From Auanema rhodensis (lineage: Eukaryota; Animalia; Nematoda), in NCBI GenBank assembly GCA_964057225.1, contig OZ059894.1:9548001-9612000 (forward strand): DNA of 64,000 bases, in the 5' to 3' direction. The notes under the pieces were generated by a model. The model saw only the letters and a program-made list of their open reading frames with translations. It made no database searches and had not been told where the DNA came from. The position numbers were made by a program, and so were the translations under genes. This document shows, piece after piece, positions 3,001 to 64,000 of the stretch (position 1 is its first letter; each line of letters opens with the position of its first letter).

Positions 3001-3372
3001 AACAACAACAACAACAATAATAAACAAAAAATATTCTTCCTGAATTGATTGATCAAATTGATCTTACAAATAAAAAAAATTCATTTTCATCTGTTGCTTG
3101 ATCTGCTGATGTTTTGTGTTTTTCGTTTTGTTGAAAAAGATAAAAGGAGAGTTAAATCAAATAAATTTTTTTCTTTAAAGTCATATACATAGAGATATAT
3201 AGTTAATGAGATCAAACAGCTAGTTAGATTATGTCAGCATCGAATTATATGTTTGAGTCCTTGAAGTAGAAGATGTTGTTGATGTTGTTGTGGCTATCGT
3301 GAAGCTAATATCCATCAGAATTGCTTAGAATATAATGGAATATAGGTACGATGAAATAGTTAAGGCTGTTGT

Positions 3373-3633
3373 CTATCCTGGACGATAAGCTGATCCAGTT
3401 CCTGTACCATTTTCAACAATTTCTTTCATTATTCGCTCGAGTGCTTGAAGATCTCTCTTTGGTCGAGCTAGAAATGATGAAATAAATTGACGAATTCAAA
3501 GGAAAAACAAGGAAAAAAAGAAAAATTTAAATGATTAAATGAAAATTGACTTACCATCAACAGACACTGATAGTACAAGAATCAATAAGCTGAATAATAA
3601 GATGAATGATAGAAGGCTGTTTTGACGAAACAT
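3373..3633 (-). CDS. Small secreted peptide precursor A (57 aa), C-terminal YRPG (predicted YRP-amide)
   Basis: Exons 3633-3555 and 3467-3373 joined by a phase-1 gtaagt...tttctag intron give MFRQNSLLSFILLFSLLILVLSVSVDARPKRDLQALERIMKEIVENGTGTGSAYRPG*: signal peptide, KR site, terminal Gly amidation signal. Confidence 0.85.
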
Positions 3634-4244
3634 TGTTGAATTAACGCTAAGCGACGGTAATAAATCCAAATATAGCAATGAAAACAGCAAGTAATGAGTT
3701 TGTGTTGATGTTAGATGTAGTTCTCAGGTTTATGAGTTAGAGCTTGTAGCTTGATGCTAGCAAAGCCTTGTTAAGTCAGGAAGTGACAGCCACCAATCAG
3801 TGGAGGAAGGTCTTTGAAGCTAAGAGAGCGAACTGTGATGGTTCAACTATCAGCCGGGCCATTCCTTATAAACTTCATGCCTTATCAGGACAGAAATAAT
3901 TTGAATTCCTCTGTCATAATGTCGTAAATATCTACACGAAACTACTGTTATCTGTTCAATGATTTGTGACTTACCAACTGAAATTCTTCTTCAACAAACT
4001 AGATTATCAGACAAATCAGATGAATGTCATCAAATCACTCAGTTAATAAGCTTTTCCAGTACTACAAACTTGAATTTAAACTTTTTTTCAATCAAATGAT
4101 TGTTTATTTGACTTTTTTTGATGTAATTTTCAGAAAGTTTTTCGTTTGTATGTTGCAACTAAAGAACATTCATAATAATCAAAACTGTTATCTATACAGT
4201 ACGGTATTTATGAAAACTGCTATACTAATGGATTGGCTACAAAG

Positions 4245-4248
<4 letters not shown>

Positions 4249-4284
<36 letters not shown>

Positions 4285-4290
4285 TCTCTC
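4249..4290. repeat. (TC)n microsatellite
   Basis: Near-perfect dinucleotide run between the two peptide genes. Confidence 0.9.
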
Positions 4291-4708
4291 TTTTTGTATT
4301 TCCAATTTCTCCTGAACGAAACTTAGTAATTCTTACTTACAACTTTCTTATTTCTTCAAACACAACAAATGATATAAACTTTAAAGTTTCTGACATCAAA
4401 AACGTGAAAACATGTTTGTTGTGAACGTGGGAGTTGACTAAATACTAAAAACTAATTTTGTTTGTTAGTAATGAGTAAACTAACAGTAATTGTGTTTATT
4501 AATATCTGCAATTTCTTCATATATGAAATTCTTTTTAAAAATTCTTTAGATATCTTTTGAAATATTATTTATTTTATAACAAGAAGACATATAAATATAG
4601 GAATATAATAGATAATTGAGATCATATTTGGTTAATTATGTGATTGAGTATCATATAATCTCTGCTATCCTCTTCATTCTTCATCCAAAATACACACATA
4701 TCTCACAT

Positions 4709-4939
4709 CTATCCTGGACGATATTGTAATTGATCTCTCTTGTTATCCATTAAGCCATGCAATAAGTTTGTTAAAATCTTTTTCTCTGTTGGTGCTGCTG
4801 AAACTAAAATTCAAATAAAATAAGTTGGTTAGCATAAGCTATACATATTATTAATATTTTTTAATTTATACTAACCATTTGTTGTGAAAATAGTTATAAT
4901 GATGAGAGTGATAATGAAGAAAAGTATAGTTGAATTCAT
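4709..4939 (-). CDS. Small secreted peptide precursor B (50 aa), C-terminal YRPG; paralogue of A
   Basis: Exons 4939-4876 and 4797-4709 joined by a phase-1 gttagt...tttcag intron give MNSTILFFIITLIIITIFTTNAAPTEKKILTNLLHGLMDNKRDQLQYRPG*. Same intron position as A and identical last 15 nt (TATCGTCCAGGATAG). Confidence 0.85.
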
Positions 4940-5205: not shown

Positions 5206-5282
<77 letters not shown>

Positions 5283-5290
5283 CTTTCTCT
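5206..5290. repeat. (TC)n microsatellite
   Basis: About 58 bp perfect run plus a degenerate flank. Confidence 0.95.
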
Positions 5291-7418
5291 TTCAAACTCT
5301 ATCAGCGTTCTATTTGTGTCTCAAGAAGAATTTGTTAAGAGCACTTGTACACTACAGTCATTTCAGCATTAATCTGTTGTAATGTTGCATTTCACACCAT
5401 TTTCGTCGAAATAATCGTCCAATCGTAAGTTGATTTCACGCAAAAATAGGTGATAACATGAAAATTTTGGTAGCAGATAATGGATTAGAGAAAAGAAAAA
5501 AACAGTCAATAAGCTATCATCATGTACTGAAAAACAATTATTTAACATTTTTATTTCAGAAACAATCCGTCTGATTCTGATAAGAGTAAATCAAGTGCAA
5601 TTCATTAAAACCATATCGTTGCTACTCAAGCTTTTCATTTTTCGCTCTACGAATTTCGAATATACAGTTCAGCTTATATGCCTACAGCTGTTAACAAGCA
5701 AATTGCTAAGCTGAGTGGAATCATGTGAACTAAAAGCACTTCACAAGCTCTAAGTTGGTATCAGAAATGTACTTTCATGCTTTGGTTGAACTATGGGATT
5801 ATGAAACTATTCATTCTTATATGATATACCTTTCAAAAGTGAATAGAAAGGGAGAGAGAGAAGGAGGGAGAGAGAGAGAAAGAGAGAGAGAGAGAGAAAG
5901 AGAGAAATAGCAATATAGACTCAGTGGTCAACTCATTCACTCTCTCGCATATTATGATGTATAGTCCAAAAAGAAGTATATCAGCCTACTGTAGTCTTGC
6001 AAATTTTATTTATTACAAGATAAAAAACTCGATACGAACTGTATTTCATCTAGATGATGACTTGTGTACGCAACTGAGCTCTGTCCAGTTAATGACCCAT
6101 AAAATTGCCTCAGGCCATGCATCTGCTGCTTCTCTCTAAAAGTAAATTTGAGCAGGCAAAACTACACTTGGTTGTTAGAGTGATGTCACATTCTTTTGAT
6201 CTTCTATCTTTGTTTTTTGTCATTGTTTCTAAAATCTCCAATAGATTGCATGATGTATGTGCGCGTGCTTACAATAGCAGTACCCGTAAAGAGGCTGCTA
6301 TTGGCGCCGAACTGTCCAATTAAGCTGATGACATCATGCTGCTAATTACAGCATATTTTTATATTTAATGTCAATTTTTAGTAACAATTGAATCAGCTTA
6401 ATCAGTAAGTTGGCAAATGAGGCTATTACATAGATTATCATCTCCAGAGAGAAAGAGAATGAAAACATAAGTTGTTCATAAGAAAACTAACAAACATTAT
6501 TCTTGAAAATTATTTGTTTAGTTAACTATATACATATATTTAAGAAATATTTTTAATGAATGACTCATGAATGAAAATCTATATAAATCTATGTTATGAA
6601 CTAAATTATATAAGTATATATACTATATTATTTGATTTAACCTTCATGCCCATAATACTTATGATTATCAAAAACGAAAAATGTAATAATGCTTGAATAG
6701 TTCTGATAAGCCTTTCTAATCGTAAACAAGCCGACATGTCCAAGACAGAACTGCCAGAAGCAGCTCTGCTCAGCTCTAACCATCACGTACTCATGACCGA
6801 GAAACGTTAAGCAATTGCCGGTTCATGCATACCTATCTATCTTCGTGAACACGGACTCATCATGCCTTAACTATCTGTTTAAGCTTTCAACATATGACCT
6901 TAAAACCCGGAACAAATGGTAGCAAAAAAAAAACTTTTTTTCGTTAAAAATTAGAGAATTTCAATGAAAACTTCATTCAAAGACGACAACTATCTGGCTA
7001 CTGGCTGAGAGTTGGCAGGATGGCAAAGGATTAGCATAATCACGATAACGATCTTCAACTTCAAACAGGAGCTAAGTCATACGCATGTGTATGTAATAAG
7101 CAATTGAGATGAGTAAGAAGAGCAGAAAAATGATATGACTGGTAGTTATCATTTGGTCAGATTGATGACTACACTCTAAGATATACGTATACATTGATGT
7201 ATATAGATGTATTCGTCTCATAAATCAAGTACTCTTTTCTCTTTCAAATTTCTAAAGAAAGAATGAATAGATGAAAGCTTTTCATATAATATTCATATAT
7301 AATCATTAGAATTTTAAAACTCTTCATAGTCTTAACAGTGATGTTGTAGTGATTACTTATACATTTCTTTTCATTTCATATGAACAAATGATATAAGCTG
7401 TTAATCCGATTTATCTAG

Positions 7419-8916: not shown

Positions 8917-9709
8917 ATGGATACTATATTTGGGACTGAATCTTCACTAGAAGGTATCAGACAACGGAATCGATTTAATCAAATCACCAAAGGATTAACA
9001 GAAGATGAAATTGAAGGTTCGTTTTTCCTCTCATGTTCTTTGAAATTATATTAAATTTTTGTTTGTGAATTATCAAAATTATTATTCTATATATCTATAT
9101 ATAGTTATAGTAATTTGTTTTTCTAGTTTATGCTACTGTACAACGACTTGTCCTCACAATCGACCATATGGAGCAGTTTGAGAAGAGAGTTGAACTAACT
9201 ACACGCATGTTACGTGATAAAGGTATTTGAAAATATTTTTTTTTATTTGAGAATATTATGGAAAAGAATCTTTTTTTTCCAGATTACAGAGGATTAGATC
9301 GCATGTTTCCTAAAGGCAAAAAAGACAAAAGAGCTGGTTAGTTGTATATATATATATATATATTTGATTTCTCTGAATATACCTTATAACATACTGATTT
9401 ATCTATATATATTTCTTGAATTTCAATATAATTCTGTGTTTTCAGCTCTAGAAAAGCGTCGAACATCAAAACGATTATCAAATGCTCAATATGATTGTAA
9501 TTCACCTCCATCATCATCATCCACATCATCATCTGGTTCTTCCTCACCTATATTTGGTAATAATTAATATAATTATAAATATTTTTAATTTATATTATTA
9601 TAAAAATTATAAATTAACGTATTTATATTCAGAATCATCATCGCCGCTGGTCGGAATAGCTGTCGGAGGTGCAGTACGAAACGGGCCAAAAGTTGGAAAA
9701 GTTAAATGA
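8917..9709 (+). CDS. Hypothetical protein, 5 exons, N-terminus uncertain
   Basis: Four consecutive phase-1 GT-AG introns give an open frame MDTIFGTESSLEGIRQRNRFNQITKGLTEDEIEVYATVQRLVLTIDHMEQFEKRVELTTRMLRDKDYRGLDRMFPKGKKDKRAALEKRRTSKR...(Ser-rich)...GPKVGKVK*. Confidence 0.75.
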
Positions 9710-10417
9710 TTGGACCACAAACTTTATTGTGTTTTCCATTCCATTATGTGCTTCATCTTCTACCATTACATTCATTCATTCATTTCTGCTTTATATTGAT
9801 CTCATCTGATTCCTGGAGAAATTAAATTTTTTTTACAAGAAATACGTAAATGTTAGTATGAGAGTACAACCCCTTTTCGCACTTTTGCACACAAAAACGA
9901 AAATGATCATCTGAACAGCTTGTAAACGATGCTGTTATCTGCAAAATTTGTATGAAAACGACTTCAAAATTTGAGAAAATAATACAATTTAAACAAAATG
10001 AAAACAAACAAAAGTGTGTGTGTTGTATGTATGTATGCATATAAGGTATTATTATTGAAATTTTATACAAAACAATGAAAGCTAGAAAGATTGAATGATA
10101 ATCATATAATCAATTAAACTTTAACTATATGATATACATCGATAACACATAATTAACAGTTTTTAGAAATATATTATTATTGAGAAAGTGAATGTATGTA
10201 ATGAATAGAAATGGAAATGAACCAGATGTCTGGCTGGCTACGCAGTTCACGCAAATAAAATTTATTTTCTTTCCAGAATATCTTAAAGATACTAAAGATA
10301 ATCCAGAGTATTAATCAGAATTTTGATTATATGAATAAAAAGTTTTTTTTACGACCCGTAAAAATGGAAAATAAGAACAAAAAAAGAATTGAATATACTA
10401 TATGAAGTGAGATATAT

Positions 10418-11991: not shown

Positions 11992-12158
11992 ACTTGTGGA
12001 GATCCGATGTCTCAACTATTTAGATCTGTGAAATGCCCTCAGGTTGTTGTGCCCATCTGAGTACCGTATCCATCGCTTAATTTCAACGTTTTCTTATGCT
12101 TTTAAATTATATATTTGTTATTTGAACTGCTAGTTATCTAAATATTTTGATTTTAGCA

Positions 12159-13337
12159 ATGGGCCTCCTAAGCTTAACCTCCGCAACTGTTGCATTGTCA
12201 GGTACTACCCTTCTCATCTCATTATTAGGTGTAGCTTATCTTCATGGCGAAGTTACTAATATGTGGAATGAGCTTGATAATGACATCAACATGTTCAAGG
12301 TACTGTATTCCATTATTTGTTTCTTAATTTTGTATTATGATACAGAGTATCACCGACGATTCATGGAACGGTATGATCTCTCTTGGAGCTGGAAGTCCCA
12401 GCACCAGAAGTCGTCGTCAATATGGTGGATACGGTGCTACCGGATCTCAGCCACCACTTGACGAGAGTACGCTATTATGACTTCTTCTTTACATATTCTT
12501 GTTTTTAACTTATATTGAATTCAAAATGCTTTATTCTTCCGTTTCTAGATTCTGCGGAGGAAGGAGGTGTCAGCGTTGCAAACCCCAATTTTCCAAACTT
12601 CATTAATCCAACTGACAAACAGACAGACCTCTGCCAATGTAATGCAGAGAATAAATGTCCTGCTGGTCCTGCTGGACCAGAAGGTGAACAAGGCCCAGAC
12701 GGAGAAGATGGTATCCCAGGAGTTGATGGATACGATGGTGGTGATGCCACTGACTCTCCCAGTTTCAGTGATGCTCTTGGTTGTTTCACATGTCCATCAG
12801 GTTTGAAATATTTGAAAAAATACAAATTCATGTTTGATGATCAGGACCCCAAGGCAGACAAGGAGATATGGGACCTTCTGGTATGCGTGGAATGCGCGGA
12901 GCTCGTGGACAATCTGGGCGTCCCGGACGTGATGGAAATCCAGGAATGCCAGGAGATATTGGACCACCAGGAGTTCCAGGAGCTGATGGAAATCCAGGAA
13001 TTATCGGAGAGCGTGGAGATGACGCAGAACAACTTGTACCAAGAACAGTATGATCAAATAGATTGATGAGCATTTTTAATTATTCTATATTCAGGGACTT
13101 CGCGGACCACGTGGACCAGAAGGACCACCAGGAGTTGCTGGAAACCACGGCAGAGACGCTCGCACCGGCCTTCGTGGACCACCAGGTATGGAAGGAATCA
13201 CCGGCTATCAAGGAGCTGCCGGAGCTGATGGTGGTGAAGGTCCAGAAGGAGCTCCCGGAAAGCCAGGACAAGACGCGGAATACTGTAAATGTCCAGAACG
13301 CGAAGGTGGTCCAACTTTCAAGAAATTCTCGAATTAA
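12159..13337 (+). CDS. rol-6: Cuticle collagen, ROL-6-like
   Basis: Five exons. Col_cuticle_N domain, RSRR furin site followed by [12 protein letters not shown]...[40 protein letters not shown] and C-terminal DAEYCKCP, collinear with recalled C. elegans ROL-6. Confidence 0.88.
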
Positions 13338-13692
13338 TAAGACAAATGTAAATTATATTCATAATTTATTTCCCAAATACAATAATTATTTTATTTTTAC
13401 CTTAATTTTGGTAATTCGTTTTCTTAAAAAAAAGAAAAATGACATATAGAAGATGGAGAGATGATGGAAAGTTTGAAATTTCAAATTTCCAATAAACATT
13501 CACAGAATGTTAAAGTTTTAAATCAAAAAACACAGACCATAAATGACTAAAAAAGATTAATTTCTTCTAATTTTAACTAAAAATTGTTTTAAAAAAATAA
13601 TTTTAACTAATTTTAACTAAAAATACATTGGGAGATATATAAATAGAGAATTAAGCAGATTTTATGCGAAAAAAGGATGTTTCAAGTTGTAT

Positions 13693-23400: not shown

Positions 23401-24747
23401 GGAGGCTTAGAAGTCCGATGTGCAAAGTATATTATAGAAAATGTAAGAGAATTTTATTTTTTATTCATTAAGTTTGATTGTTGCATCTTCGTCTTGATGT
23501 TGTTTATCTCATCAACATACTTTGATATGTTTGTTACAGGCATTTTCAAGACAACCCATTGTAGCTTTATGTTGGCTTAACTGGTGTCTGAAGCATAAAT
23601 TCGAACAACAGGTCAGTATCAAGCTTTGTTGTTAACTGAACAATCATTCTAATTGTTGGTTCTTCTTCTTCTCTTTTTTTCAACTTTGTTATGCAGGTTG
23701 TACAAGCATGTATGCCAAGTGTTGCTCGATTATCGTTATGTAGCCTAGAACAGCATCGACATATGATGAGTGAAAAGGTATTTGCTGATATCTTAGCAGC
23801 TAAACTAAGAGGATGTTATGAGAAAGTAATACTTTTCTAATTATAATGCATATATAAATTGATTTGTATTCATCAGGCAGTTCATGTATTTCGTACAATA
23901 CATCAAATGGATCATTTCTCTATTGATATGGATCGTTGTCCACGATGTGGTCGAACTAAGGATGGTTTGCGAGTTAAAGTAAACTCTCATCCATGTCGGT
24001 GAGTGTATGAGACATTCACAATCTCTATTCAATTCATTGTTATCAATCTTTATATCAAAACGACATGCGGCACCGGTTACTCACCTTTCGATCTTTTTCT
24101 TTCTCTGTTCCTCTTTCTTTCATGCACTTAGCTACTATTATTACTATAACATACTTGTTTGTATTAAACCTTTTTTTGTAAGCCCTTATAGCTCAGTGGC
24201 AGAGCGTCTGTCTCGTAAACAGAAGGTCGACGGTTCAATCCCGTCTGAGGGCAATTGTTTTACATTAGAAAAGTATGTTTTATGTTTCAGAAAACAAATA
24301 GGATGTGATAGATGCCTTACTGAAAACTGTGAAATAGAAATCAAGGGAGGAGAAGATTTACAGGCAAGATTATATAAGATTCTTTCAAAACAAATTGCTA
24401 AAGTATTTGCGGTTTTCTCATTTTGTTTGTTATTTTGTTTTTCAACTCAACTTGTCAATTTCGTTTTCCCAACTGTTTGTGTTTAGGCCTTTTATCAGTG
24501 TGCTCATGGATTGCTACCTCTCAATGATATTACTGAAGAATGTCACTGCCAAACCCGATCTCTTGCTATGCATTTAGGTAACTATATAGCTTCATTCAAT
24601 GAATGTGTAAATATGACAAGCTTAACAACATGTTATACAGGTGCCGCATACCCTGCTAGAAGGCCAGAAGATTTCATAATGAACGGAACTACAGTGCGAA
24701 AGACCCGTTCGCCAGATAGAAAACATCGGCATAAAGACAAAAATTGA
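20479..24747 (+). CDS. BTB/POZ-like protein with Pro/Ser-rich N-terminus and Cys-rich C-terminus
   Basis: About 16 exons splice in frame. BTB-like segment VGIVVNTTRFLICRHQLCHSSEYFKNL...DTLETCMRLSRRFEAGGLEVRCAKYI. C-terminal CPRC...HPC...CDRC...CAH...CHC. One GC-AG intron. Confidence 0.8.
24182..24253 (+). tRNA. tRNA-Thr(CGT), intronic in the BTB gene
   Basis: Cloverleaf: acceptor GCCCTTA/TGAGGGC, anticodon arm TCTGT-CT CGT AA-ACAGA, GGTTCAATC T-loop. Confidence 0.95.
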
Positions 24748-25549: not shown

Positions 25550-25621
25550 TGCCCCCAGGCGGGATCGAACCACCGACCTTTGGTTTACAAGACCAACGCT
25601 CTACCACTGAGCTATAAGGGC
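25550..25621 (-). tRNA. tRNA-Thr(TGT)
   Basis: Reverse complement GCCCTTATAGCTCAGTGGTAGAGCG TTGGT CT TGT AA ACCAA AGGTCGGTGGTTCGATCCCGCCTGGGGGCA. Confidence 0.95.
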
Positions 25622-45300: not shown

Positions 45301-45372
45301 GGTTCCATGGTGTAGCGGTTAGCACTCAGGACTCTGAATCCTGCGACCCGAGTTCAAATCTCGGTGGAACCT
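45301..45372 (+). tRNA. tRNA-Gln(CTG)
   Basis: Canonical GGTTCCATGGTGTAGCGGTTAGCACTCAGGACT CTG AATCCTGCGACCCGAGTTCAAATCTCGGTGGAACCT. Confidence 0.97.
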
Positions 45373-48750: not shown

Positions 48751-51700
48751 TTAAATTCCAAGTCTACTGAAGAAACTTCTGAAATTTCAACGAATTGCCC
48801 TTCTTATTCAAAATATTATGAACTTACTTGAACTTGACGCGAGTTTTATCTTTTTCAGTACCAGACGATAAGCTAGTTGATCTAAGGCTTTTCATTTCCT
48901 AATAAAACTTGATGATTTAACGTCATGATAAATGAAATAAAACCTCGAATTGAGATGATATGTTAGTGAAACTCAAGGGATTAGCTAATGCTCTACTGAA
49001 AACAGCTTCAGTCTTTTCTTTAGAATATGGATCTGCTAAATCACCACGTAATACTAAATATAATTAATTATATGAATTATTGTATAAAAATATTTATACC
49101 AGCAGTACTTTTAGGCATATTATATGATACATCAAATAATATACATAAAGATGCTGGACCAAAGTTATTATTTCCGGCTGATCTCAGAATCACATGTCGA
49201 TATCCTTAATATAGACATTTTACAAGTTATATCTTTTTTTTTTTTTTTTAATTATTTACCATTGTTCAGCTTATCAACCATTAAAACTCTATAAGCTATC
49301 GGAATATTTTCACCTCCGTTTCGTTTATGAACTGTAAATCGTATAAAGGCCAATTCAGACAACATGATCTAAAGATTAGATATAAGAGGAATTGCTGATT
49401 GACGAAACAAATTAAATGTCAATTTTACATTTGAGAATTGAATTTGTTCTTCCGGATATAATGTTTTGAATAACATTTCCGGAGCTGATTTGCTGGAATA
49501 TATTGTTCGACCCTCTGTATCTATCAATTCGGCTGTAACTACAGTCGTAAATGATTCTTCTTCACGTGATAGTAATGATGAAAGGAAATAACCAGATAAA
49601 ATCTGAAAATAGATCAAATTTAATGAGAAAATAATGCAAAAGCAACCGAATAGTGTGAATTTAGTAATAAAAATGATAACGTCTATTCCACGTTGCTTAC
49701 GTGGTAGAGGGATTGGTAGGAAGGAGGAGCGGAGGGGGGGGGGGGTGGATATTACGTGAATGGCATTACCTTGATACGAAGCTTAGTTGGAATCATTTGC
49801 TTTACACCATGTTTAGCCGAATGTGGATCATAATTCAATGAAATATCTCGTAAAGCTTTTGATTTCAAAACATATCTATAAGATCATTTATCATTAATCA
49901 ATCTCTTCAAAGATATCTATACCCAGTTCCACCATTACTTTCAAACAAGGCTTGATTCAAAAGCATTTCTGCTCCATTTGTTTGAAAATTTAATGCAACC
50001 ATCTGTATTCCTAACATCCAAGCTCTCTAAAATTGAAAACAAAAATGAATGAATCTGAAACAAATCTACTGTACCATAGGATCAAAGTTATCAGATAAAA
50101 AACGAAAACTTGATGGATAGGCTCTAATCATTTTGCGGGAAGTAAATTTGATTGCTTTCTTTGAATCATTTTTCACATTTGTGATTTTCTTCACAATTTC
50201 CTCAGATAATGAACACATAACATACAATCTATTGTCAGCTAAAATTCATAGAAGAAACAGAATTCAGATGTGGGTTAGAGAACTTACGATTCCAATCTTT
50301 CGGCATCTTGTCAGCTTCCAAATAGTTTACTAAGTTTGAAAAGTCAACTGAAGCTTCATTTTCTTTCATCGGAGTTAATTGTGTTTCTTTTACCATTGGT
50401 CCCAATTCAGACATTGCATTCTAAAACTATTTTAAGATAGCTTTACAAACTTAGATTTTTATCGAAAGGTCAAGAAATGAACAACAAACTTGCCAAAGCA
50501 TTCAATTTCTCTTCATCCATATCGTCTGATGAATCTGATAATGATATAATGGATATCTAAACATCATCAATTATTCAATCAGTTAATGTTTTTGAAATAA
50601 ACCTTACGATCTGGGAATTCTTCTCCTTCTCTTGTTGGAGTTGAAGGTGTTTTACATTTCTTAGCTTTCACAATAATTTTGTATTTAAGCAGTTGAGGAG
50701 AAGGTGGTTCAACTCCTTCAAGAAGCTTAAAAAAACATAATTCTCTCATATATTTGAAGAGAATTCGACTAACTGGATGAGATTTTAAAGGTTCTGCTAA
50801 CAGTTTATCACCAAATATTGTTCGAAAGATTTCAGCCAATTTCTTCTGTTGTGAGTATTTCAGATGATTTTCAACGGAAAGAATAACTGGATAAGGTGAT
50901 GCTTTAAATGCTGAATCATTAATAGCATAACATACATCCTTGATTTCAAAAGAAAATATTAATAAATGAGATAATTTAGTATTTACCCTCAGTGGAATTT
51001 CATTCATTCTCATAAAATGCTGTGGACCATGTGTTACAACAGGCTCCGTATCCCCATCCCAACAGTCTAACTCAATACATCGACATCCAGATAATAAAAC
51101 CTGTAAGAGGTTATGATATAACCAAATAAATTTTCTCATAGTTTATATATTTCGATTGATTAGAAGCCATTTTTGCGTCTTTGTTGTATTATATTTCAAA
51201 ATATTTTATAGATATTATCAACTTACTTGTCTGTACATCTCAACATCTGCTTTGCATATGCTATGTTGGCTATTAGCTGTAAGCATTGCTGCACACTTTA
51301 ATTGAAGTCCTATAATCAAAATGTTTTTCTTAGTTTTCTTTTCTCATAACAAACTAACTACACAATAATCACAGAAGGAGAAGAAGAAGAAGAAGAAGGT
51401 TGAAACTGACCATAACAGTATGTGTTGTGAGATGAATTGATGTAATATTGGGTGATAGGCTTATCCATTTCAGCTTCATTCAATGTATAGTGACTGTTAC
51501 TGCTATCAACAACGTAATCACTCCATAGATAGTGCACGAATATTGGATATGTTATAGCTTCATCTGAAGAAACATGATGACAAAAGTTTTGTTCGGAGAA
51601 CAATTTACCTTCTTTGTAACCTAGAGATTTCAGGATTCTCTTCAAGTTTTCTAACGATAAAGGTGGATGGAGTATCTCATTGCGTCTCGGGTCTCGTTGA

Positions 51701-62100: not shown

Positions 62101-64000
62101 CAAAAATAATGAGATCAGAGATAAGAGATAAGAGAAGTAGAACTCACGACTAGAGAGGTCGCGATAAAACACACGGTTTGCTTAGAACTGCTTTTTCTCG
62201 ACACCCACTGTTATTTATGACTTCGTACTATGCAGCTTTCTGTCGATTTTGCCACTAAGCTGGGACAGATAGACAGGAAAAGATATGAAAAATAATTCAA
62301 AAATAAAAAAAGTACAATATGATTCACAAAATCATGTTATTGTATCGTTGTTGATATTTTTATTTCCCAGATTCTCTTGCCCAGAATGGCAAGCTGGACC
62401 ATGGTCTGCCTGTTCTGAGAAGTGTGGTGATGCTTTCCAATACAGATCCGTTACCTGTCGCTCCGAAAAGGAAGGAGAAGAAGGAAAACTCCTCCCCGCT
62501 GATGTAATAGAATACATATAAGCTTCTATTTTAAAATTTCTTTAAGGCTTGTGATGCTGAAGCTACCGTTGAGACCGAAAGAACCTGTAACCTTGGACCA
62601 TGCGAAGGACTCAAGTTCCAAACTTCTGAATGGAAATTGGTAAGAATTGTGGTTTCTATTATACATGTCTGCTTGTCTAACACATGAATGTGCCATAATG
62701 TTGGCAGTTAGAACGAAAAAAGACTGTTTTACCAATATTAGTCAAATATGGCCCCGTGGCCTAATGGATAAGGCGTCGGTCTCCTAAACCGAAGATTGCA
62801 GGTTCGAGTCCTGCCTGGGTCGAAATTTTGCATAAGCGTTTCGCTTTCATTAAGATTCCTATATAGCAGCTTTCATTAATATTCCTAACTGTTACGTTGT
62901 TTCAGTGCTCCAAGTGTAACGATACTGAGGAAACTCGTGAAGTTAGTTGCACAGATACCAATGGAAGAGCCTATCCACTTGAGAAGTGCCTTGTCGACAA
63001 CACCACCGAAATCCCAATTGATACCAGGTATATTTAAAACAAATAAAAAATATTTAGCTATTGTTATTACAGATCCTGCGCCACCGTTCAGCCATGTCTT
63101 TACGAATGGACTGCCTCCCAATGGTCTAAGTGTTCCACTGAATGCGGACACGGACACAAGACTCGTCGTGTTGTCTGTGCTATTCATCAGTTGGGTGATC
63201 TCGAGGTTGTCGATGAAGGATTGTGCCAGGGAGAAAAACCAGGAGACCGTGAAGACTGTACCAACGAAGAAAAGTGTACTGGAACCTGGTACACTGGACC
63301 TTGGTCAGACTGTACTGAAAAGTGAGTTGAATAAGTTTCAAGCCTTAAAACTGTTGAGAATTATTCAGATGTGGGGGAGGAAAACAAGACCGTTTGACTG
63401 TTTGCTTAAACTACGACAAGAAGCCAGTCCCAGAATGGTGTGACGAAGCTGAGAAGCCTGCTGAATCCCAAGATTGTAACGTTGAGGAGTGCCCAAGTAT
63501 GCTGATTTTCTGAATTTATTTTACTAATTTTCTGGTTTCAGCTTGCTTTGATTCTGAGTTCGGTTGCTGCCCAGATAACTCTACTTTCGCTACTGGCGAA
63601 TATAACCTAGGATGCTCCAACTGCTCTGAGACCGAATTCGGATGCTGCGGAGATAACGTTACTGAGGCCACTGGAGCCAATCTTCTTGGATGCCCAGAAT
63701 TCGTCGAAAGTGAATTGACTGTCAGCGACTTGAAGGAAGCTGAAAGCACCAATGAAGTTGAAGGATCTGGAGATTCAGCTGCTGATGCAACTGAATGCAA
63801 TGTCACCAGTGAAGATGGAGATCAAGCTACTGTTAACTGCAAGGTTGCCAACATGACGAATGTTGAAGACCTTGAGCTTTTGGGTAATATTTCATGCTAA
63901 AACAATTGCTGTTTCAAATATTTATTTAAAGGTAATGAAACTATGGACGGTAACGCTACTATTCATTGTTCCAAGACTGAATTCGGATGTTGTCCCGATT
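59106..64000 (+). CDS. mig-6: Papilin (5' part; continues beyond the window)
   Basis: MRLLLL...RSKRQAYQVYVGGD...GAWGPWS...CSRTCGGGVQ TSP1, ADAMTS Cys-rich and spacer regions, several TSP1 repeats, then SEFGCCPDN lagrin-type repeats. Matches recalled C. elegans MIG-6. Confidence 0.96.
62750..62822 (+). tRNA. tRNA-Arg(CCT), intronic in papilin
   Basis: GGCCCCGTGGCCTAATGGATAAGGCG TCGGT CT CCT AA ACCGA AGATTGCAGGTTCGAGTCCTGCCTGGGTCG; one C-T mismatch in the acceptor stem. Confidence 0.92.

Follow-up and report, generated by a model that had tools for sequence, protein, structure and literature searches.

Two small genes on the minus strand

The window analysed here, a stretch of 64,000 nt (C1:9548001-9612000), belongs to a 181-Mb nematode assembly, that of Auanema rhodensis, with a G+C content of about 33% and with arrays of SL1 RNA genes. 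Two small two-exon genes, both on the minus strand, are legible in it directly by reading and translation. In gene 1, exon 1 (3555..3633) begins with an ATG at 3633, the first ATG in its open frame, and its translation gives 26 signal-peptide codons plus one base of a split codon, with a maximum Kyte-Doolittle value of 3.42 over a 10-residue window. The intron (3468..3554) has 87 nt, is in phase 1 and reads gtaagt...tttctag, the closure of the frame having been checked. The second exon of 95 nt (3373..3467) encodes Ala, Arg-Pro, the pair KR, a predicted 25-residue peptide placed directly after the KR (3379..3453), a Gly and the stop, a TAG at 3373-3375 that comes right after YRPG. The joined model has 57 aa, with no internal stop. 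A canonical AATAAA was not found within 280 nt after the stop.

Gene 2 has the same layout. Its exon 1 (4876..4939) opens with an ATG at 4939 and is translated into 21 signal-peptide codons plus one base of the split codon, with a maximum Kyte-Doolittle 10-residue window of 3.50. The intron is again in phase 1, with the donor gttagt, and runs from 4875 to either 4798 (tttcag) or 4804 (ttttag). These acceptors are 6 nt apart, so that both are in frame; exon 2 starts at 4797 or at 4803, respectively, and the joined models of 50 or 52 aa are both free of stops. With the ttttag acceptor, exon 2 has 95 nt, the same length as exon 2 of gene 1. In its shorter form (4709..4797) it encodes a short pro-region, the pair KK (4783..4778), a 12-residue spacer (4777..4742), the pair KR (4741..4736), the heptapeptide DQLQYRP (4735..4715), a Gly and the stop, which is also a TAG right after YRPG (4709-4711). 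An AATAAA is found 209 nt past this stop, with weaker variants closer to it.

The signal peptides were judged heuristically, by hydrophobicity and the -3/-1 rule only. Both first exons encode a hydrophobic core, the residues in positions -3 and -1 from the exon junction are small, and both phase-1 introns are placed where this rule predicts the cleavage of the signal peptide. An earlier note on this DNA had described two same-strand two-exon genes with these properties, and our reading and translation agree with it. As a control in the window, stop codons with at least 25 open codons upstream were collected from both strands (n = 1573) and compared with a model in which an ATG exon of 18-30 codons that encodes a hydrophobic core lies upstream and is followed by a GT[AT]AG donor, an intron of 40-150 nt and a phase-compatible pyrimidine-AG acceptor. 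Two of the 1573 open-frame ends fit this signal-peptide two-exon model, exactly the two YRPG ends; since the criteria were modelled on these two genes, the value is to be read as a background rate, essentially zero, and not as an independent discovery. A third copy was looked for between and beside the two genes and was not found.

Some repeated and gene-like sequences surround the pair. Tracts of (CT)n, equivalent to (GA)n on the gene strand, are located at 4249-4290, about 600 nt upstream of gene 1, and at 5206-5290, about 270 nt upstream of gene 2, and a third one is present at 2846-2864, on the downstream side of gene 1. These tracts could be what is left of a duplicated unit, or else promoter-proximal elements of GAGA type. 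Between the genes, 22 nt at 3955-3976 resemble the donor region of gene 1 (TGGTAAGTCA...) and follow, on the minus strand, a short hydrophobic frame interrupted by stops; they represent at most a decayed exon, since no exon of YRPG type follows.

Elsewhere in the window, a cuticle collagen gene is found at 12147-13450 (plus strand), with a weak Pfam Collagen match and Gly-X-Y frames over several ORFs, for which a word search returned no protein at E <= 0.001. An exon with a PI-PLC X domain (E 1.5e-32) is present at 50579-51139 on the minus strand, and four tRNA genes are scattered at 24182-24253, 25550-25621, 45301-45372 and 62750-62822. In the segment adjoining the window on the left (L037, C1:9538001-9548000), we recognised by eye only an acidic troponin-T-like first exon at positions 9575-9787 of that segment (minus strand), calponin-like repeat ORFs at 6888-7378 (minus strand), and TPR/BBS8-like and M16-peptidase-like ORFs. 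The start of the troponin-T-like gene is 3.6 kb downstream of gene 1 and is a possible synteny anchor. On another contig, a large array of SL1 RNA genes occupies C3:6741531-7099372. At least 51 copies were scored in it, with spacings that are often 252 or 504 nt, and each of them falls just below the Rfam gathering score.

Relationship between the two genes

The two genes end in identical codons for YRPG-stop, as the earlier note had pointed out. The last 15 bases are the same, and the identity extends to an island of 16 nt (3372..3387 and 4708-4723, minus strand) that comprises the codons Y-R-P-G-stop plus one base. The 15-mer TATCGTCCAGGATAG occurs in two copies in the window, against none in 100 shuffles. 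The pair formed by gene 1 and gene 2 is not due to chance. By our estimate from typical codon usage, all synonymous positions in the last five codons would be identical by chance in less than 1% of cases. Local gene conversion or a nucleotide-level constraint are possibilities for such an identity amid the similarity lost elsewhere.

In the genome, YRPG-stop is found at 8 other sites, roughly as many as for the reversed pattern used as a control. The pattern search suggested earlier, meant for nematode genomes in general, was carried out in this one; five of the eight sites were read and rejected as paralogues, having no comparable context. A tandem array at C6:11119813-11131378, with a period of 361 nt and at least 32 copies, surfaced through an over-loose pattern that allowed TGG.

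The DNA alignment of both genes shows similarity only in two short islands, the 16-nt one and another of 10 nt, and none in introns, leaders or flanks. The shorter island, AAGAGAGATC (3450..3459 and 4732-4741, minus strand), covers the codons K-R-D plus one base and in both genes coincides, in frame, with the processing site; the shared 10-mer was found in 1.2% of shuffled exon bodies. The best local alignment of the paralogues is correspondingly KRD-LQ against KRDQLQ. A helix-to-helix alignment of the middle parts of the two proteins, as proposed in the earlier note, is not above chance: once YRPG is left out, the similarity of gene 1 and gene 2 lies within the range of shuffled sequences (P 0.11 for the global and 0.40 for the local alignment), and BLASTP gave no match between them. 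It may still be correct; with the ttttag acceptor both second exons have exactly 95 nt. The hydrophobic moment of gene 1 is unusual, at 0.81, a value attained by 47 of 2000 shuffles, while that of gene 2, at 0.57, was reached by 530 of 2000.

The relationship better supported by these sequences is one in which the paralogues would have in common the processing site together with the residues immediately following it, and also the amidated end, with 19 more residues in between in gene 1. Since the shared parts are KRD(Q)LQ and YRPG, the product of gene 2 is most likely the heptapeptide DQLQYRP-amide, accompanied by a 12-residue spacer peptide bounded by KK and KR, so that this gene would probably yield a YRP-amide of 7 residues.

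A counterpart in Heterorhabditis

Since novelty can be claimed only if relatives are absent, a full profile search was run, as the earlier note had recommended. A HMMER profile from the two second exons was compared with 1.84 billion protein representatives (cut-off E 0.001) and returned exactly one match, the Heterorhabditis bacteriophora protein A0A1I7X5G2 (UniRef100_A0A1I7X5G2; 58 aa; E 4.1e-6), with the match reaching the last residue. It is a predicted protein with the source name "Venom peptide" and a singleton in a collection of 15 billion proteins. Its sequence begins with a signal peptide of its own, followed by a short pro-region, a KR, the conserved block with a Gly-rich tail, and YRPG at the very end; relative to gene 1, two residues are inserted in this tail. 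Its AlphaFold model consists of a helix at residues 25-46 and a coil tail, with a mean pLDDT of 68, a modest confidence. When A0A1I7X5G2 was searched against the Auanema genome, only the gene 1 locus was found. We consider gene 1 to be a conserved gene, since this protein was independently predicted with the same architecture.

The comparison of gene 1 with A0A1I7X5G2 gives 22 of 26 identical residues (85%) after the KR and 10 of 29 (34%) before it, in the prepro part; this difference concerns gene 1 only and one species pair. The known range of the family is two species, and long-term constraint rests on this single comparison.

In UniProt, proteins that were previously uncharacterised receive names from ARBA rules and from the ProtNLM language model (PMC11701636). 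Given this practice and the lack of a Pfam domain in A0A1I7X5G2, the name "Venom peptide" is very probably automatic. No paper mentioning the protein was found in a literature search, and searches for YRPamide, YRPG, SAYRP and similar strings in the literature gave unrelated matches only.

The remaining homology searches were run on the exons separately, the joined coding sequences being used for frame, length, hydrophobicity and identity counts. Each second exon matched only itself in its own genome. Pfam gave nothing meaningful for the four separate exons and A0A1I7X5G2, ESM Atlas had no usable match, and among PDB sequences there were chance matches only. When the 40-aa open frame surrounding exon 2 of gene 1 was compared with proteins through a word index, no candidate was returned, and the same search with A0A1I7X5G2 returned this protein itself only. 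For gene 2, no relative in other species was found in the databases searched, the protein-collection search having included it only within the two-exon profile, as its open frame of 33 aa is shorter than the 40 aa required by the word search. Synteny through the neighbouring cuticle collagen was also tried, with 38 candidates and none significant. The sole return of a metagenome scan (L039) belongs to a bacterial histidine kinase and was rejected, the likeness of its N-box region to the helix being a chance one; the stretch concerned, at positions 2020-2088 of that locus, closely resembles the gene 1 helix in its first half, which is a false-positive risk for pattern searches.

No already named nlp family was matched, and the string YRPG occurs neither in the text of the pan-nematode NLP catalogue (PMC8764417) nor in its eight supplementary files. 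A canonical multi-copy RPamide precursor is present in the Auanema genome at C7:6722222-6722882, with at least four GR..[FL]RPGK copies over several exons, and the YRP genes are additional to it. It was not matched in own-genome searches with either second exon. This precursor region (L040-L043) includes an NLP-2-like copy with the core MGRTSLRPG.

Amidated peptides as the proposed products

In gene 1 and A0A1I7X5G2 the conserved block is immediately preceded by a KR, in gene 2 a KR precedes the heptapeptide, and all three sequences (3/3) end in Gly-stop. A peptidylglycine monooxygenase domain (Cu2_monooxygen, PHM, PF01082) is encoded in the genome on contig C6 (75.8 bits). We suggest that gene 1 and gene 2 are tandem paralogues encoding small secretory precursors of neuropeptide or peptide-hormone type, with YRP-amide products that are probably ligands of peptide GPCRs, and we give this reading a probability of about 0.6. 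The N-terminal signal peptide encoded by exon 1 would direct entry into the secretory pathway; cleavage would occur after the dibasic KR, with the basic residues then trimmed, and the C-terminal Gly would be converted into the amide, leaving peptides that end in Tyr-Arg-Pro-amide. The product of gene 1 would be a 25-residue peptide made of an amphipathic helix followed by a flexible tail rich in Gly and Thr. For both genes, transcription, splicing, cleavage, amidation and receptor action are what we infer. The receptor would probably be a peptide GPCR. As candidates we place first those receptors of the expanded GnRH-like RPamide group that are still orphan, purely by analogy, the Arg-Pro-amide end being common to RPamides and YRP-amides.

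Conservation in the mature rather than in the prepro part is the pattern of receptor ligands, the reverse being usual for toxins and antimicrobial peptides. The net charge of the side chains is -1 for gene 1 and 0 for both A0A1I7X5G2 and the gene 2 heptapeptide. A secreted signalling peptide is favoured because it is the mature part that is conserved and not the prepro, and because the charge is close to zero, which speaks against a cationic membrane-active peptide.

The conservation of gene 1 in a second genus argues for a distinct peptide family. With odds that we place somewhat short of even, the YRP-amides may form an unnamed peptide-hormone family in a subset of clade V nematodes (at least Auanema rhodensis and Heterorhabditis), in which a long helical member and a short one, alike only in an initial Asp-(Gln)-Leu-Gln and a terminal Tyr-Arg-Pro-amide, signal through an orphan GnRH-like RPamide-type receptor or another orphan GPCR. 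The earlier note had proposed the unlisted genes as a candidate new family. Its distinctness is upheld by the second genus, but it was not entirely unlisted: the family is unnamed and unstudied, while one predicted H. bacteriophora member was already in UniProt under its automatic name. No C. elegans match was found in the search covering UniRef.

Parasite control has peptide signalling in nematodes among its target areas, and many of the peptide GPCRs of these animals remain orphan; a conserved amidated peptide that the nlp catalogues do not list would be a further candidate ligand, and at the same time an example of lineage-restricted peptide signalling in the group containing Heterorhabditis. 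Intron-split genes of 50-57 codons, such as these, are missed by ORF tracks and mostly by annotation. The scope is modest, one more small family beside about a hundred known.

Other readings and comparison with known peptides

Gene 1 could be real and gene 2 a decaying or non-functional duplicate, or a partial copy keeping only its two ends, which we consider unlikely. Gene 2 has no relative in any database searched, its similarity to gene 1 is confined to the 10- and 16-nt islands, and it has a weaker donor and an ambiguous acceptor. Its frame is nevertheless intact over both exons, with ATG, hydrophobic core, phase-1 intron, KR and Gly-stop all present and with AATAAA and its weaker variants after the stop, and a 50-aa frame with all these features would hardly survive unselected, given flanks that retain no similarity. 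Less probable still is that the two genes encode secreted effectors, venom-like or antimicrobial peptides acting on host, prey or microbes through an amphipathic helix. The net charge near zero and the conservation of the mature part (85% against 34% in the prepro, the opposite of the usual toxin or antimicrobial pattern) disfavour this defence-peptide alternative, which the earlier note had offered, and gene 2 lacks a significant amphipathic segment. The predicted helix of gene 1 appears amphipathic, tandem duplication and fast divergence are common in defence peptides, and the sole relative, from an entomopathogenic nematode, is called "Venom peptide", but this name has very probably no other source than automatic naming. 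Nematode cecropins and other amphipathic helical antimicrobial peptides have small secreted precursors with an amphipathic helix, as predicted for gene 1 (PMC10506718); cecropin-type peptides are strongly cationic, in contrast with the values of -1 to 0 for gene 1, A0A1I7X5G2 and the gene 2 heptapeptide.

We regard as very improbable that gene 1 encodes a ligand of a class-B (secretin-type) GPCR like calcitonin/DH31, PDF or NLP-49, in which the helix would bind the receptor extracellular domain and the chain would end in Pro-amide. A length of 25-27 residues, a helix followed by a flexible Gly-rich tail and the Pro-amide end would suit such a ligand, and class-B peptide receptors (SEB-2, SEB-3 and PDFR-1) exist in nematodes (PMC11004728). 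However, SEB-2 already has a ligand of calcitonin/DH31 type, NLP-73 (CTDH-1), which carries a C4-C14 disulfide and a GP-amide end (PMC7615250, PMC11004728). NLP-73 is a longer peptide with a C-terminal Pro-amide (PMC7615250), as is predicted for the product of gene 1, and gene 2 would also have this end, but the N-terminal disulfide loop and GP-amide of NLP-73 differ from the predicted YRP-amide end of gene 1, gene 2 and A0A1I7X5G2, which are free of cysteines, and there is no visible sequence resemblance. The calcitonin/DH31 likeness drawn previously is reduced to a helix and a Pro-amide end. Moreover, gene 1 has no sequence match to any family in Pfam, ESM Atlas or PDB sequences, and gene 2 would probably give only a heptapeptide sharing both ends, a product more in keeping with recognition of a C-terminal motif by class-A receptors.

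The YRP genes were also compared with the RPamides. Nematode RPamides are defined by a C-terminal RP-amide together with Ala3 and Gly5-Arg6 (PMC7303124), and nlp-85, -86 and -87 keep GR four to five residues before RPG (PMC8764417). It is conceivable, although we find it unlikely, that gene 1 and gene 2 are divergent RPamides (nlp-2/-22/-23/-46, nlp-85 to -87) acting on GNRR receptors, a sub-branch rather than a family of their own. The Arg-Pro-Gly amidation end with a preceding aromatic residue, as in FRP-amides, points in this direction, and so does the tandem duplication from which RPamide genes, too, arose (PMC7303124); of the seven GnRH-like RPamide receptors (GNRR) in C. elegans, five are still orphan (PMC11538413). 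Against it stand the canonical precursor located separately on C7 and unmatched by either second exon, the absence of YRPG from the NLP catalogue, and the lack in both peptides of the RPamide signature, either Ala3 and Gly-Arg at 5-6 (PMC7303124) or GR before RPG (PMC8764417); the earlier note had already reported an IA[IL]GR-type motif of the RPamides as absent.

We keep the reading of gene 1 and gene 2 as precursors of distinct YRP-amides, which would have in common with the RPamides (NLP-2, -22, -23, -46; nlp-85 to -87) an Arg-Pro-amide derived from RPG and preceded by a hydrophobic or aromatic residue, a tandem arrangement and a restriction to nematodes (PMC7303124, PMC8764417). RPamide precursors contain several copies flanked by KR and their peptides carry the Ala3/Gly5/Arg6 signature or GR before RPG; the YRP precursors, in contrast, would release a single peptide from a direct Gly-stop end, without this signature, and the predicted peptide of gene 1 differs further in its 25 residues and its helix.
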